The notes beneath the pieces are model-generated. The model had not been told where the DNA came from. It did no database searches and was given only the letters and a program-made list of their open reading frames with translations. The translations under genes and the position numbers were made by a program. A stretch of 64,000 nt of DNA from Octopus sinensis (Eukaryota): positions 27,404,001 to 27,468,000 of the forward strand of contig NC_042997.1 in assembly GCF_006345805.1 (NCBI RefSeq), given 5' to 3'. This document shows positions 11,570 through 58,120 of this stretch, piece after piece (position 1 is the first letter of the stretch; every line of letters starts with the position of its first letter).

Positions 11570-11678
11570 TATTTATATATTGTATATAGACATAACGGAA
11601 TTTCCCCATGAGACATATTTAACGTAAATTATGAAATTTATAGATATCGAGGCGGAACTAGCAAAATGACGGAAATGC
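11570..11678 (-). promoter_or_regulatory. Gene A proximal promoter: GCATTTCCG motif (11670-11678), kappaB site GGGGAAATTCC (11597-11607), TATA-like TATATAAAT (~11571-11579)
   Basis: Motifs read directly. Order and rough spacing are conserved upstream of three other exon-1 copies. GGGAAATTCC fits the NF-kB consensus GGGRNNYYCC. Confidence 0.7.
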
Positions 11679-11812
11679 ATTCTTCCGTTGAGGTTTTAAA
11701 TCCGGAGGAAACTTATCGGTAAGTGGAAAAATTTTCGTGACCCATATATTTGCTATTATGTACATTGGGACAGGTATTACAATAAAAGGTTCTATTTTTT
11801 ACCTATTGTTTA

Positions 11813-13240
11813 CTAGCCTGTCAACCCGGTATGGGTGCAGTAGGTATCGAAAGAAATTAATTATTCATAAACAGTCACGTAAATATTACGATCCTGTCTC
11901 TTGTGTACTTTTGATTTGTAAAACATCAGTTTTAACACGGAATCTCCAACCAAACTGTTTTGAATAAAACATGTAACTTCTAATAAATGTGTTGAGTGAC
12001 CTTATATTTTTCCAATCACGTGTGTGCGCGCGTGTGTGTGTGTGTCTCTCTCTCTCTCTAAATATATATATATATATATATATATCTTTTTCTCTCTCCT
12101 TGTATATATATATATAATTATATATATATAATAATATATATATATAATATATATATATAATATATATATATATATAGTATATATATATATATATATATAT
12201 TATATATACTATAATAGTATATGATAATATATTATATATATATATAATATACGTATATATAATATATATATAATATATATATATATATATAATATATACA
12301 TATAATATAATATAATTATATATATATATTATATATATATATATATGATATATAATATGTATATATATATATATTTAATATATACTTTATATATATATAT
12401 ATATATATATATATCTATATATATATATATATATATATATATATATATAATATATATATATATTGTGTGTGTGTGCGTTTTTACAAAACATCCGTAAATT
12501 TCGCAAAAATTTTCATTGAATAATGGGATGGCATTGTATAATTGTACACAATGTAGCATACATGACATCCTATCCAACGAAATACGTATTACATCACGAA
12601 ATAAGTGATGATAACAGATATAAGATAATGTTTTCCCTCAAAGTTTTAACTGACAATAGAGAACATACAATATAACGAAAGTTTATATCATATATATGTC
12701 TCTGACCTTCAGCGTAGTACCTACCTTTGTTTCGGGACATATCAGAATACATTATTATACACAGTACATTAAACTTTTCAAACATTAATTCGAGTTTTTA
12801 AATGACCCTTTGTTGACTGCTTACATGATGTGCACCACCAAGCGATGGATTATCTGATATATATAGGAAGTTGATTAAAGCGTGCGTATACACATGGCTG
12901 TATGCCGATTAAAGCACGTTCACTGTCTATCACTATCAAAAATCATTCACAGTGTAAATCCCACTGGATCTACCTCAAGAATTCCTGCGTAGTCGTTGAA
13001 GCATAAAATAGAATTCAAGAATTCACGAGATTCTCTATTAATTACAACGATCGTTTTAACTCATCTTGCATCGATCCTTCGCAAGTGAGATAGTATACAA
13101 CTGGTTATGATGCATCCTTGGGTGCAGATGTGGCTGGTCGGGTGACTTTTCAGAAACAAACTCGTACAATATACTCGGTTACGCCTGGTTCGATTATGCA
13201 GAATGTCGTTATTTGCCAATAGGTTATTGTCTATAGGCTT
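11813..13240 (-). mobile_element. Possible highly decayed Helitron remnant
   Basis: Minus-strand end has a short hairpin (accc/gggt, 11824-11836) then CTAG (11813-16). Weak helicase-like fragments upstream (REFLNSI; NFRYIVC). Resemblance only. Confidence 0.3.
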
Positions 13241-13279
13241 CTTGGCTTCGAATATATATATATATATATATATATACAT

Positions 13280-54748: not shown

Positions 54749-55833
54749 AAAATTCACGTGAATCAAACACATAAAATAATAAAAAAAAAGCGACAGTAGT
54801 AATGACATGATGGTAATATCTCGCAATCGCTAAACGGACTTTGTTCGTCAACTGATATGAACAATGGATTAAGGAATGCTACTTACAACGCCTATATAAC
54901 AGGAAGTACAAAATTACTTAAATCTAAAGGAGCTGATTATAAAAGTCGCATGTTTTATTTTTTCTACGCCAATCATTCTTCTGGTGTATTTGTAACAGAA
55001 GCATGATCGCTCTTGAACTTTAGCTGCCTACATTGTGGCTTTTTACTTTTAACTTCCCATTTTGGTTCAGATCCATTTAGTTTTACCTGCACCGTCCACC
55101 TGTGAACTTGATGTGAGAGCAGTTTGATTTCCCTTTGCAGTTTTCATCGCGAACAAAATTCAAACTAGAATCCTTGTCGTTATACTTTGCATTTGAATAG
55201 ACTTGTAGTCAGAAGTTTTGTGACGCTGTACTTCGGGGTTTTTGTAATTGTTATGTATTCTTTTTTTATGAGCATTTAAATCTATATAATATTTTGACAA
55301 TTATAATGTCCTACCATTTTATTGGATCTAATTTTAGCGATAATTATCAGTATTTAATAAGTATCATTGAATTTGTTTAACACAGGACATAATATATCTG
55401 ACATTAAACCACAATTCCTTCAACCACATACATATCTTATAGTTGAGTATTCTTTTACGTAAAAGCTCCATGTTCAAGCCAAAAGGCATTTTTCCTATTT
55501 TGTTAAATAAATGCATGCGCGCTTGTGTATTTGCGTGTAACTGTGTGTGTGATTGCATGCTTGTGAATGTATGTGTGCCTGCGTATGCGTGTGTGTGTGT
55601 GTCTGTGCATGCCTATGTGTGTGTGTGTGTGTGTGTGTCTGTGTATGTGTCTATGAGTGTGTGTGTGTGTGGTTGTATGGGTGTTTGTGCAATTTACTGT
55701 TCAATTTTTGGTGAGATCAGCAATAAGTTACTCCATGAGAGCCACTGCCTGGTACTGCATCAGGGCGTTTATTATTATTATCATTATTATTATTATTATT
55801 ATTATTATTATTATTATTATTATTATTATTATT

Positions 55834-57590
55834 TCCTCCAGGTATATTACTACCTCCAGGAGGTACTAATATATCAGGAAACTTTACCTACCTTTAGAAA
55901 CCCCCTTTCCCAATGCATAAAAGAGAATTGGAAAATATTCCTAGACGACTGATTTATACTCTGGAATGAAAACATAGATAAACTCCTAAAATTTAAAAGC
56001 CTATTGAACAGCGTCAAACCAAACATACAGTTCACAATGGAATACAACCAAAAGGAGCTTCCATTTTTAAATATACTAATTAAAAATTAAACCTAAAAAT
56101 AGAAACGGACATATTTTTACAAAACTACAGACGCCAAACAATATCTGCTTTTTGAGTCATCCTACCCAAGACACACCAAACCAAACACCCCATCAACCTT
56201 GCAAGAAGGATATGCACAATAGTGTCGGAACAAAATACCAGAATCTTTAGACTGCAAGAACTCAAAAACACCCTAATTGATAGACACTAACCAGTTCAAC
56301 TCATAAAGGATGGAATCAGACGTGCAACACAATTCGACATAGAAAAGTTCAACACAGCAACATACCTTCCCCAAAAATACTGCTGTACATATCCATATAA
56401 ACCCCAGAAACAAAGAAGCCTTCACCATCATCACCCAAAATTTACTAATGGACCCCAAATTGAAGGAAATTTTACACATACATAAAATCATTAAAAGCTA
56501 CAAAAAACCGAAATCACTAAAAAAGATCCTCACAGAGGCAAAATTATTTTCTAAAATAACGGATGCAAAGTGAAAAAATGTGGTAGACCAAATTGCGCAA
56601 CATGCCTAAACCTTCTAGAAGGATCAGAATTCCTCTTCAAAGAGGGAAAAAATTCAATATCAAATCTAATTTTACTTGTGCTTCAGAAAACCTGATTTAT
56701 GACGTAAGATGCTCGGGCTGCCACCAAAACTACATAGGGTCCACGGGATTATCGCTCAGACGCAGATGCATTCTGTATCGACAGCAGATTGCATTCCCAG
56801 AATATAGAATGATACCCTCTAGTGAACATATTGAGAAATGCGCAAAGCAACTACTACCACAATTTATAATCTTTCCATTCTATCAATATGCTTTGGAACA
56901 CCAACACAAGTTAGATTAATTAGGAAACTTCTTCATTGAAAAATATAAGCCAAAACTTGATCCATTTCTAACATTTCTACATAAGTAAACTCACCTCATT
57001 GAAAAAAATATAAAGCAAAACCTAACCACTTGTAACATTCTACTCCTTCTAAACTAAATCATATTAAATTGGTCATTTCCAACATGTTTGATTATCTCCC
57101 TTATCCCGGAAAACATTCCTGATTACCTTCCCGTGCCTGGAACTCCATATTTCACGATATAGTTCAAGAAGACATGACACGATATAGTTCAAGAAATTTG
57201 AAAAGAAAATACGAAACCGTTTATTTCTCAAAAAACTATGTTACTATATGCAAACTTTTATAACATTTGTCTAACATAACGATTTAAATATATTCTTTAA
57301 CCATATAGCACAACCCTTCTGTAATTTTTTCACTCCTTTTTGTCTTTTATACATCCAGCCACGTTCTTTCATATACCAAAACTCTCACCTCTATGTGTGT
57401 GTGGGTGTGTAGGTGTGTGGGTGTGTGGGTGTGTGTGTGTGTGTGTGTGGCCACGTGTGTATCGTTGCCGATTTTTTTCCTCTGTCTTCCCTTCCTTAGA
57501 TCTTACCTTTTCCTATGTTTCTGGCGAAGAGCTCCGCTCTAATCGTTAAATCCCCCTTCTTTCTTTCTTTTCTTGAGCATCCAATAACAC
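55834..57590 (+). mobile_element. Penelope-like element: RT C-terminus, GIY-YIG, then pLTR-like tail with a degenerate hammerhead (57517-57551)
   Basis: WKIFLDD, IQFTME, ELPFL, YKTTDAKQYL, LARRICTIVS, LIYDVRCSGCHQNYIGST. 57440-57590 is homologous to 30830-30975. Confidence 0.88.
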
Positions 57591-57705
57591 TATTGTTATA
57601 TATATATATATTATATATATATATATATATATATATATATATATGGTGAAAATATTGCTACAAACGTAAATATAGCAACAAAATCGTTAATGAATATTTA
57701 CTGAA

Positions 57706-58120
57706 TGTAGGTGTCTTCATTGTAATGCTCGATTACTTGGCAGCAAATGTCGAGTCGGCAGTTATATTATTATTATTTTTGACTTTGGCTGAAATGTTCC
57801 TTCGCGATGTGATATGCGTTCTTAATGATACTACCCTTTCCTGAGTTTGCTTATATATAATATGAATACAAAGCGGAATTATCACAGGTAAACAATGTTT
57901 TCTTTCAGCGAACGTAGAAGGAACGAAAATATTACGGAAATGCTTGTTTCCGTCGAAGTTGAGAATCCGGCGATAATCTATCACATATTGTAAATAACAA
58001 CATCTTGTGACCGACATAATTCTTGTAAAATGGGTTAAGAGGAACAGGACATTATAATAACCTGTTAACCCATATATTGCACGGGGGTGGTGTCTGTGGT
58101 CATGATTGATCCTCAGGTAC
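57706..58120 (-). pseudogene. Orphan IL-17-like promoter + exon 1 (unit D, MKTPT) with lost splice donor
   Basis: Minus strand aagtaatcgagcattacaATG AAG ACA CCT ACA followed by ttcagt instead of gtaagt. The upstream block 58000-58049 matches 26630-26679 (2 mismatches in the first ~42 nt). No minus-strand exon 2 seen between 51.4 and 57.7 kb. Confidence 0.75.

Follow-up and report, generated by a model that had tools for sequence, protein, structure and literature searches.

A conserved promoter cassette with predicted NF-kB/Rel sites upstream of octopod interleukin-17-like genes

Four homologous blocks of about 500 bp lie in a 64-kb stretch of Octopus sinensis chromosome CM016859.1 (the window, 64,000 nucleotides in full), each placing the same series of short motifs in front of an interleukin-17 (IL-17)-type first exon. 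We are confident that this series, some 300 bp long, is a conserved promoter cassette; that it forms, taken as a whole, a shared cytokine promoter containing a kappaB (kB) site is probable. Searches of the window with blastn and nhmmer returned exactly four blocks, here A to D, with a mean column identity of 69% and with all the motifs listed below in aligned columns. Every block ends with an ATG, four codons and the position of a GTAAGT splice donor (the donor is mutated in D and the start codon reads ATC in B). We read the four sites as paralogous copies of the promoter, 5′ untranslated region (5′UTR) and mini-exon 1 of octopod IL-17-like genes, which would have spread by tandem and segmental duplication within the O. 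sinensis IL-17 cluster. The NCBI models of gene A (XP_029632966.1) and of gene C, isoform X2 (XP_036370247.1), use exactly this mini-exon below the cassette, in keeping with the shared promoter proposed in an earlier note on this DNA (the original prediction). The blocks and their boxes are:

11380-11900 (-): block A, promoter, 5′UTR and exon 1 of the live gene A (XP_029632966.1); the sole window copy with all boxes intact
11698-11706 (-): A, CCGGAT box (TCCGGATTT)
11669-11688 (-): A, inverted GGAA pair ACGGAAGAATGCATTTCCGT, containing GCATTTCCG at 11670-11678
11654-11662 (-): A, TAGTTCC box (GCTAGTTCC), which ranks first in family-wide k-mer enrichment
11597-11607 (-): A, canonical kB site GGGGAAATTCC, with the decamer GGGAAATTCC at 11597-11606
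11568-11579 (-): A, TATA box TATATAAATAAG
11540-11551 (-): A, initiator (Inr)-like GATATCAAAAAG, predicted start ~11545
11421-11435 (-): A, coding part of exon 1, ATG AAC ATG ACA AAA, with the donor GTAAGT at 11415-11420
26500-27010 (+): block B, dead; CCGGAT, CGGAA and GCATTTCCG (26725-26733) kept
26789-26797 (+): B, kB-like GGTAGTTCC
~26803-26810 (+): B, TATA deleted
26961-26963 (+): B, start codon changed to ATC
38700-39210 (+): block C, belonging to a live gene (isoform X2, XP_036370247.1); cassette eroded furthest
38925-38933 (+): C, GCATTTTCG, one mismatch to GCATTTCCG
38986-38994 (+): C, kB-like GGTAATTCC
39010-39019 (+): C, weakened TATA TATATGTAAG
39150-39164 (+): C, coding part of exon 1
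57660-58170 (-): block D, solo promoter and exon 1
57935-57943 (-): D, GCATTTCCG
57875-57883 (-): D, kB-like GATAATTCC
57850-57859 (-): D, TATA
57821-57832 (-): D, Inr TCATT within this interval
57720 (-): D, ATG
57700-57705 (-): D, splice donor mutated to TTCAGT

The positions originally given for the GCATTTCCG box, three exact and one with a single mismatch, were all recovered, as were the kB-like box that follows it in every block and the TATA box beyond, which is weakened in C (TATATGT) and removed from B by a 17-column deletion. Three exact matches to GCATTTCCG compare with 0.11 expected in the window, and none of 100 shuffles reached three. Eight of its nine columns are invariant in the four copies, a level attained by only 2% of 9-column windows; the others as conserved all overlap the ATG context. 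The kB box has six of its 11 columns invariant, which 26% of windows equal, and is thus not exceptional within the window.

The same arrangement was found outside the window. Promoters were read upstream of each annotated ATG at ten further loci: P0002, P0008 and P0011 of O. sinensis; P0003, P0007, P0016 and P0036 of O. bimaculoides; P0037 of O. vulgaris; P0029 and P0033 of Argonauta hians. From distal to proximal the landmarks are ATGTCCTGTT, TTATATnGGTCAC, CCGGAT, CGGAW-N-yTTCCG(T), TTTTnnTAGTTCC (TAGTTCC), a kB-type box, TATA, an initiator-like TCA(K)T block, the 5′UTR, ATG with about four codons, and GTAAGT. This order is kept in O. bimaculoides, O. vulgaris and Argonauta hians even though the flanks cannot be aligned. 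The comparison across the cluster and other cephalopods called for by the original prediction, made here on octopods, yields a box order shared from Octopus to Argonauta. A hidden Markov model (HMM) of the 200-nt core, built from 14 sequences, gave 17 matches in ~300 kb of loci. Sixteen have E <= 6.5e-10; 15 among them immediately precede an IL-17-type exon 1, and the other is a promoter-only partial duplicate (L002:7275-7424); the seventeenth match is weak (E 0.037). An earlier 4-sequence HMM had missed the distant and the Argonauta promoters.

Unbiased k-mer enrichment recovered AGTTCC, CCGGAT, AATTCC and TTTCCG. AGTTCC/TAGTTCC is present in seven of 11 lineages (P = 1e-9), CCGGAT in six (P = 1e-9), GTCCTGT/TCCTGTT in five to six (P = 1e-6) and TTTCCG in five (P = 1e-5, borderline after correction). 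GTCCTGT appears as the decamer ATGTCCTGTT in both Argonauta promoters; the decamer lies ~230-350 nt upstream of the ATG and is identical in these and five Octopus promoters, with two more one base off (sites include L003:9700-9720, L004:9785-9800 and, in the window, 26627-26636 and 58043-58052). TAGTTCC, ATGTCCTGTT and CCGGAT, the most conserved boxes of the family, were missing from the original list of motifs. It is conceivable, though we think it distinctly improbable, that these three boxes, kept from Octopus to Argonauta, are sites of octopod-specific or newly immune-linked factors that co-regulate the whole IL-17 family, with the kB site tuned copy by copy so as to divide strongly inducible from constitutive or tissue-specific genes. 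AP-1, cAMP-response element (CRE) and IRF consensus sequences are essentially absent from the promoters (one CRE-like match, in Argonauta P0029). A STAT-type TTCNNNGAA is not conserved family-wide; it is aligned only in D, P0008 and the promoter L002m, and occurs scattered in B and P0016.

Conservation was also set against a null of 25 shuffled-sequence alignments (MAFFT, 11 lineage representatives), in which the maximum was 0.59. The AATTCC half of the kB box reaches a mean pairwise identity of 0.79, and column conservation is 0.66 for TTTCCG and 0.65 for the Inr block. The original prediction would have failed had its motifs been no more conserved than their flanks. It holds in part: GCATTTCCG stands out among the four copies, and AATTCC, TTTCCG and Inr exceed the shuffled null family-wide, but the kB box is unexceptional inside the window.

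For the kB box, the best match to GGGRNWYYCC within 50 nt upstream of TATA was scored in each promoter. Perfect matches were found in A (GGGAAATTCC), O. bimaculoides P0016 (GGGGAATTCC) and P0036 (GGGAAATTCC), and in the O. vulgaris orthologue P0037; P0011 of O. sinensis has one mismatch (GGGATTTCCA, reverse strand), two mismatches occur in a further seven promoters, among them B, C and the two Argonauta genes, and D has three. The decamer of A is the only perfect one in the 64-kb window, but 73% of shuffles contain at least one, so the weight of this site comes from its position. Perfect decamers lie 23-31 nt upstream of TATA in three of 11 lineages, and matches with at most two mismatches (11 of 14 promoters) start 23-32 nt upstream of it, or 14 nt in the TATA-deleted B. 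When no mismatch, up to one or up to two are allowed, random 50-nt windows of the same loci contain a match at rates of 0.0015, 0.021 and 0.19; the corresponding binomial P values over the 11 representatives, 6e-7, 6e-5 and 1e-5, overstate the independence of promoters that are homologous. In a rough neighbour-joining tree without bootstrap, perfect sites are spread out, from the pair of genes that branches off first through to gene A, from which we infer that a canonical kB site was ancestral and degraded several times over, in many cases through a T within the GGG half. These data support an ancestral Rel/NF-kB site in the predicted IL-17 promoters. The original reading of a canonical Rel/NF-kB site gains support from the perfect decamer of A and from distant paralogues, in which GGGGAATTCC, GGGAAATTCC and GGGATTTCCA occupy the matching position upstream of TATA. 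The paralogues do differ in their match to the consensus, as had been suggested, from perfect in A to two or three mismatches in B, C and D, and probably differ in Rel responsiveness along with it; the differences do not follow the line between live and dead copies.

A real promoter might nevertheless carry a non-Rel site in the B/C/D-type box (GGTAATTCC, GGTATTTCC), with NF-kB acting only in paralogues that have a canonical decamer and with TAGTTCC, CCGGAT and ATGTCCTGTT as the main drivers. The family-invariant part of the box is its 3′ half, AATTCC/TTCC, and not the GGG half; the seven promoters with two mismatches typically have a T in the GGGR 5′ half; and TAGTTCC, CCGGAT and GTCCTGT are each more enriched than any k-mer derived from kB. 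The scatter of canonical sites over early- and late-branching genes in the same rough tree fits an ancestral kB site instead. The box of C would, moreover, be one mismatch from the c-Rel consensus NGGRNWTTCC, which Kunsch et al. in 1992 are said to have found tolerant of a weak 5′ half. On balance we consider the non-Rel box unlikely.

GCATTTCCG forms the right-hand part of a longer element, 20 nt in all, whose two GGAA cores are inverted (ACGGAAGAATGCATTTCCGT in A, CCGGATGTAGGCTCTTCCGG in O. bimaculoides P0016, CCGGATGAAAGCTCTTCCGT in O. sinensis P0011, CAGGATGTAGAAATTTGCGT in Argonauta P0029). Its GCA prefix is limited to the subfamily of the window, and only yTTCCG(T) is shared family-wide. 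A GGAA/T core is present in both arms (ACGGAAG on the left; the reverse strand of GCATTTCCG is CGGAAATGC), CCGGAW occurs on the same strand in ten of 14 promoters, and an extended CCGGAAGT-like ETS consensus is reached only by the left arm of some copies. The ETS resemblance originally noted for GCATTTCCG is limited to the GGAA/GGAT core, the box forming one side of an inverted GGAA..TTCC pair. For CCGGAAG and CCGGATG an ETS factor can reasonably be proposed; an NFAT-type GGAAA would match the right arm just as well. Head-to-head ETS palindromes are known, as in the stromelysin-1 promoter with its 4-nt spacer. The octopus element resembles them in its inverted GGAA..TTCC cores and in the CCGGAAG/CCGGATG of one arm, but its spacer is ~8 nt and its right arm (GGAAAT) is a weak ETS match.

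Another assignment, which we regard as doubtful though far from negligible, is that GCATTTCCG is no ETS site at all but either an arm of an inverted GGAA(N8)TTCC recognised by a dimer, for instance a Rel-homology protein of NFAT type, or itself a composite site. The 20-mer CCGGAWG-N6-yTTCCGT in A, B, D, P0008, L002m, P0011 and P0016, degenerate in Argonauta P0029, is consistent with this. The established cores are GGAAA for NFAT and GGAA for ETS, and the reverse-strand GGAAAT fits both alike. The 8-nt spacer between the cores, however, exceeds that of a single Rel-homology dimer, CCGGAAG/CCGGATG in the left arm are good ETS cores, and no STAT, IRF, AP-1 or CRE consensus is conserved at the position of GCATTTCCG.

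The genes below these promoters have two coding exons. Exon 1 comprises ~110-130 nt of 5′UTR, the ATG with four codons and GTAAGT; exon 2 encodes the signal peptide and the IL17 domain. Our spliced model of the gene at 9.1-11.4 kb (A) is 100% identical to XP_029632966.1, and that joining 39.2 and 50.8 kb (C) equals XP_036370247.1; both proteins are named "interleukin 17-like protein" and contain PF06083 (gathering cut-off 24), and the C protein is 86% identical to its O. bimaculoides orthologue. The window holds four exon-2 blocks beside the four promoter/exon-1 blocks, and their pairing is incomplete:

9088-9603 (-): exon 2 of A, IL17 domain and stop codon, intact; PF06083 52.7 bits; pairs with block A
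36688-36984 (+): exon-2 remnant of B, with an in-frame stop, cysteines lost and a repeat element inserted at 36984; pairs with B
49930-49986 (+): annotated alternative first exon of C (isoform X1, XP_029644799.1, MYRSSYCYLTSSPSTIIQE), ~800 bp upstream of exon 2
50785-51315 (+): exon 2 of C, IL17 domain, intact; PF06083 51.9 bits; 11.6 kb downstream of C exon 1
60372-60899 (-): exon 2, intact, of another live gene, the fifth (product XP_029645913.1, in which MKTST precedes this exon); PF06083 61.3 bits

No Pfam match was found in the B remnant. On its own strand, the 60.4-kb exon 2 comes before promoter D. Since window 63988-60151(-) is collinear with the part of the paralogous P0008 locus (L002) that spans intron 1 and exon 2, the cassette-type exon 1 and promoter of the fifth gene would lie ~230-750 bp past the window end; XP_029645913.1 starts with MKTST, as from a cassette-type exon 1. 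For D, a search from 51.3 to 57.7 kb at both the protein and the DNA level detected nothing similar to an exon 2. D is best described as a solo copy, ~700 bp long, of a P0008-type promoter and exon 1, being 78% identical to the P0008 promoter (L002:7503-8201). The four IL-17 units of the original prediction are thus four promoter/exon-1 blocks, of which D has no exon 2, the 60.4-kb exon belonging to a fifth gene. We read B and D as the dead copies, and A, C and the fifth gene as live. A promoter-only partial copy of the cassette without TATA or exon 1 is also present at L002:7119-7430(+), and orphan IL-17 promoters such as this and D seem to be a recurrent by-product of cluster rearrangements.

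The state of the cassette in the four copies is as follows:

A, live: all boxes kept, none lost
B, dead: CCGGAT, CGGAA and GCATTTCCG kept; TATA, Inr and ATG lost, and one extra kB change
D, dead: CCGGAT, CGGAA, GCATTTCCG, TATA, Inr and ATG kept; splice donor and kB 5′ half lost
C, live: kB-like GGTAATTCC kept; CCGGAT (CTCGAC), CGGAA (-GGTA), AGTTCC (AGTCTT) and Inr lost; GCATTTCCG and TATA with one change each

The proposal that the cassette decays in dead copies does not stand. GCATTTCCG is perfect in the dead B and D and mutated in the live C, the most eroded of all; because dead B and D keep most boxes and live P0008 has the worst kB-like box, cassette decay does not track gene death.

The proximal end of the cassette looks like a TATA-plus-Inr core promoter. 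Counted from the first T of TATA, the A base of TCAKT falls at 30-31 nt in D (TCATT, 31 nt), P0008, L002m and P0007, and at 34 nt in P0011; in gene A that of ATCAAA, counted by eye, also falls at 34 nt. Related TCA/CCA forms occupy about the same place in most of the remaining promoters among the 14 compared; the Inr is lost in C and in B. A TATA-to-Inr distance of ~30 nt is the canonical spacing, and on this basis starts are predicted at ~11545 (A) and ~57826 (D). The window proteins are on record only in the genome assembly, with gene models available as coding-sequence ranges only. The fifth-gene model, A and C isoform X2 all use the exon 1 downstream of a cassette; C and P0008 also have annotated alternative first exons.

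In some genes, and in C particularly, the cassette may no longer be the working promoter, transcription starting instead at the alternative first exon near exon 2. Isoform X1 of C begins at 49930, ~800 bp upstream of exon 2, and the NCBI model of P0008 begins ~780 bp upstream of its exon 2, bypassing the conserved exon 1. The C cassette has no CCGGAT, CGGAA, AGTTCC or Inr left, and intron 1 of C consists of 11.6 kb of repeats. C isoform X2 and the fifth-gene model, on the other hand, use the cassette-type exon 1, and the alternative exons may be ab initio predictions. We rate such a switch of promoter as rather unlikely, though not remote. Neither TATA nor cassette was found upstream of the alternative first exon of C (49930-49986); the similar one of the P0008 gene lies at L002:10001.

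Several points weigh against a shared kB-containing cytokine promoter, over and above the overstated independence of the binomial tests. B, C and D have two to three kB mismatches, and 19% of random 50-nt windows reach two. Live P0008 has AATTTAATTCC in place of the kB box, with no recognisable 5′ half, and its NCBI model starts at another exon; live gene C combines the most eroded cassette with a second first exon in its annotation. The ETS assignment extends no further than the GGAA/GGAT core. A search for transcripts that would locate the starts returned a sole Logan-only protein (P0022), on a 1.7-kb genomic contig, and no cDNA. Upstream identity is 89% between P0036 of O. bimaculoides and P0037 of O. 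vulgaris and 84% between P0003 of O. bimaculoides and P0002 of O. sinensis, so that footprinting of orthologues or close paralogues cannot separate constraint from recency; for the O. bimaculoides orthologue of gene C (P0021) no record was found.

A rival account is passive inheritance, in which the motifs would be common only because the duplicates have not yet diverged and no box would be constrained. The four blocks are 67-78% identical overall, stretches such as ATCACATCGAG and TTGAAAAT in the 5′UTR equal the kB box in conservation inside the subfamily, and perfect GCATTTCCG survives in the dead B and D. What makes this account very improbable is that distant paralogues and Argonauta, whose flanking DNA is unalignable, retain the boxes in unchanged order and within a narrow range of distances from TATA; that box conservation exceeds all shuffled-alignment nulls; and that three lineages carry canonical kB decamers at one and the same position. 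The homology of the blocks, the order and spacing of the boxes, their conservation across the family and between genera, and the place of exon 1 in annotated models are direct observations.

We accordingly favour the shared kB-containing promoter, and infer its start site, binding factors and inducibility as follows. The core would be formed by TATA and the initiator, with an NF-kB/Rel-type site ~25-30 nt upstream of TATA, that is at about -55 from the predicted start. Farther upstream would come TAGTTCC, the inverted GGAA pair (CGGAW..yTTCCG, including GCATTTCCG), CCGGAT and the distal ATGTCCTGTT. A signal would induce binding of Rel/NF-kB beside the core promoter, GGAA-recognising factors (ETS-type, or Rel-homology proteins such as NFAT) on the upstream boxes may act jointly with Rel, and the outcome would be inducible transcription of the cytokine.

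This predicted architecture is of the expected kind for a cytokine gene. Its likeness to the kB-dependent cytokine promoters of vertebrates lies in gene A, where a perfect GGGRNWYYCC is found near TATA, as is typical of an inducible cytokine promoter; the decamer GGGAAATTCC of gene A is identical to positive regulatory domain II (PRDII) of the IFN-beta promoter. In the human IL-17A proximal promoter RelA and STAT3 both act (PMC6491678). The octopus cassette differs from vertebrate cytokine promoters in having no conserved STAT, AP-1 or IRF consensus, and the octopus IL-17 genes are an independent, lineage-specific expansion. The nearer precedent is the oyster Crassostrea gigas, where CgRel binds the CgIL17-3 and CgIL17-6 promoters in chromatin immunoprecipitation and activates them in luciferase assays, and where IL-17 is induced after Vibrio challenge (PMC12379375). 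TRANSFAC/AliBaba served to predict the oyster NF-kB sites, and the study reports no multi-box cassette common to the promoters (PMC12379375). In both systems the proximal promoter of a molluscan IL-17 gene contains an NF-kB site, a predicted one in octopus; binding and activation by Rel were demonstrated in oyster, and the octopus circuit is a prediction from sequence. As Rel control of IL-17 has already been established in oyster, the octopus would be a further, predicted case.

The cephalopod IL-17 repertoire is among the largest known. Albertin et al. 2015, as cited in PMC8353272, describe a tandem expansion of 31-36 IL-17 genes in O. bimaculoides. The window is part of the corresponding O. 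sinensis cluster, with two-exon genes in tandem and inverted arrays. In the literature searched we found no description of a shared promoter cassette for octopus IL-17 genes, published work being concerned with the coding genes. The present analysis offers a ~300-bp proximal promoter with named boxes, suited to reporter and electrophoretic mobility shift assays, and a family alignment whose natural variation is a ready mutagenesis series (perfect kB in A, GGTAATTCC in C, box losses elsewhere). The cassette HMM could serve to annotate first exons and orphan promoters in octopus IL-17 clusters, where gene models disagree on the first exon. The link from Rel to IL-17 is carried from bivalves to cephalopods as a prediction only; the finding as a whole is useful for cephalopod immunology and annotation, and unsurprising.

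We considered whether the cassette might be part of a transposon and rejected this, as in the ~300 kb of loci scanned it occurs only at IL-17 first exons and the window repeats are different elements. The element that truncates exon 2 of B (36985-37300(+)) encodes FTCASENLIY..CSGC..YIG and resembles the open reading frame at 56587-56916(+). By eye it is GIY-YIG/Penelope-like, an identity left unconfirmed by a Pfam scan of the 56.6-kb frame, which gave no match at E <= 0.01. Fragments of a long terminal repeat retrotransposon pol gene (RVT_1, RT_RNaseH_2 and Integrase_H2C2, in several frames) lie at 2118-3606(+). A repeat of ~400 bp resembling a short interspersed nuclear element has at least ten copies in the window at 74-94% identity (61123-61532, 40569-40960, 5193-5581, 32930-33313, 19607-20060 and others) and six in L002; B and C have several copies inside their long first introns. 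Another short interspersed family, of ~230 bp and 84-88% identity, occurs at 63200-63480, 6531-6762, 17996-18226 and 54181-54409. (TA)n microsatellites mark the start of intron 1, just past the donor, in A (11230-11330(-)) and D (57610-57650(-)), and (CA)n/(CACAC)n runs lie near D at 57400-57470.

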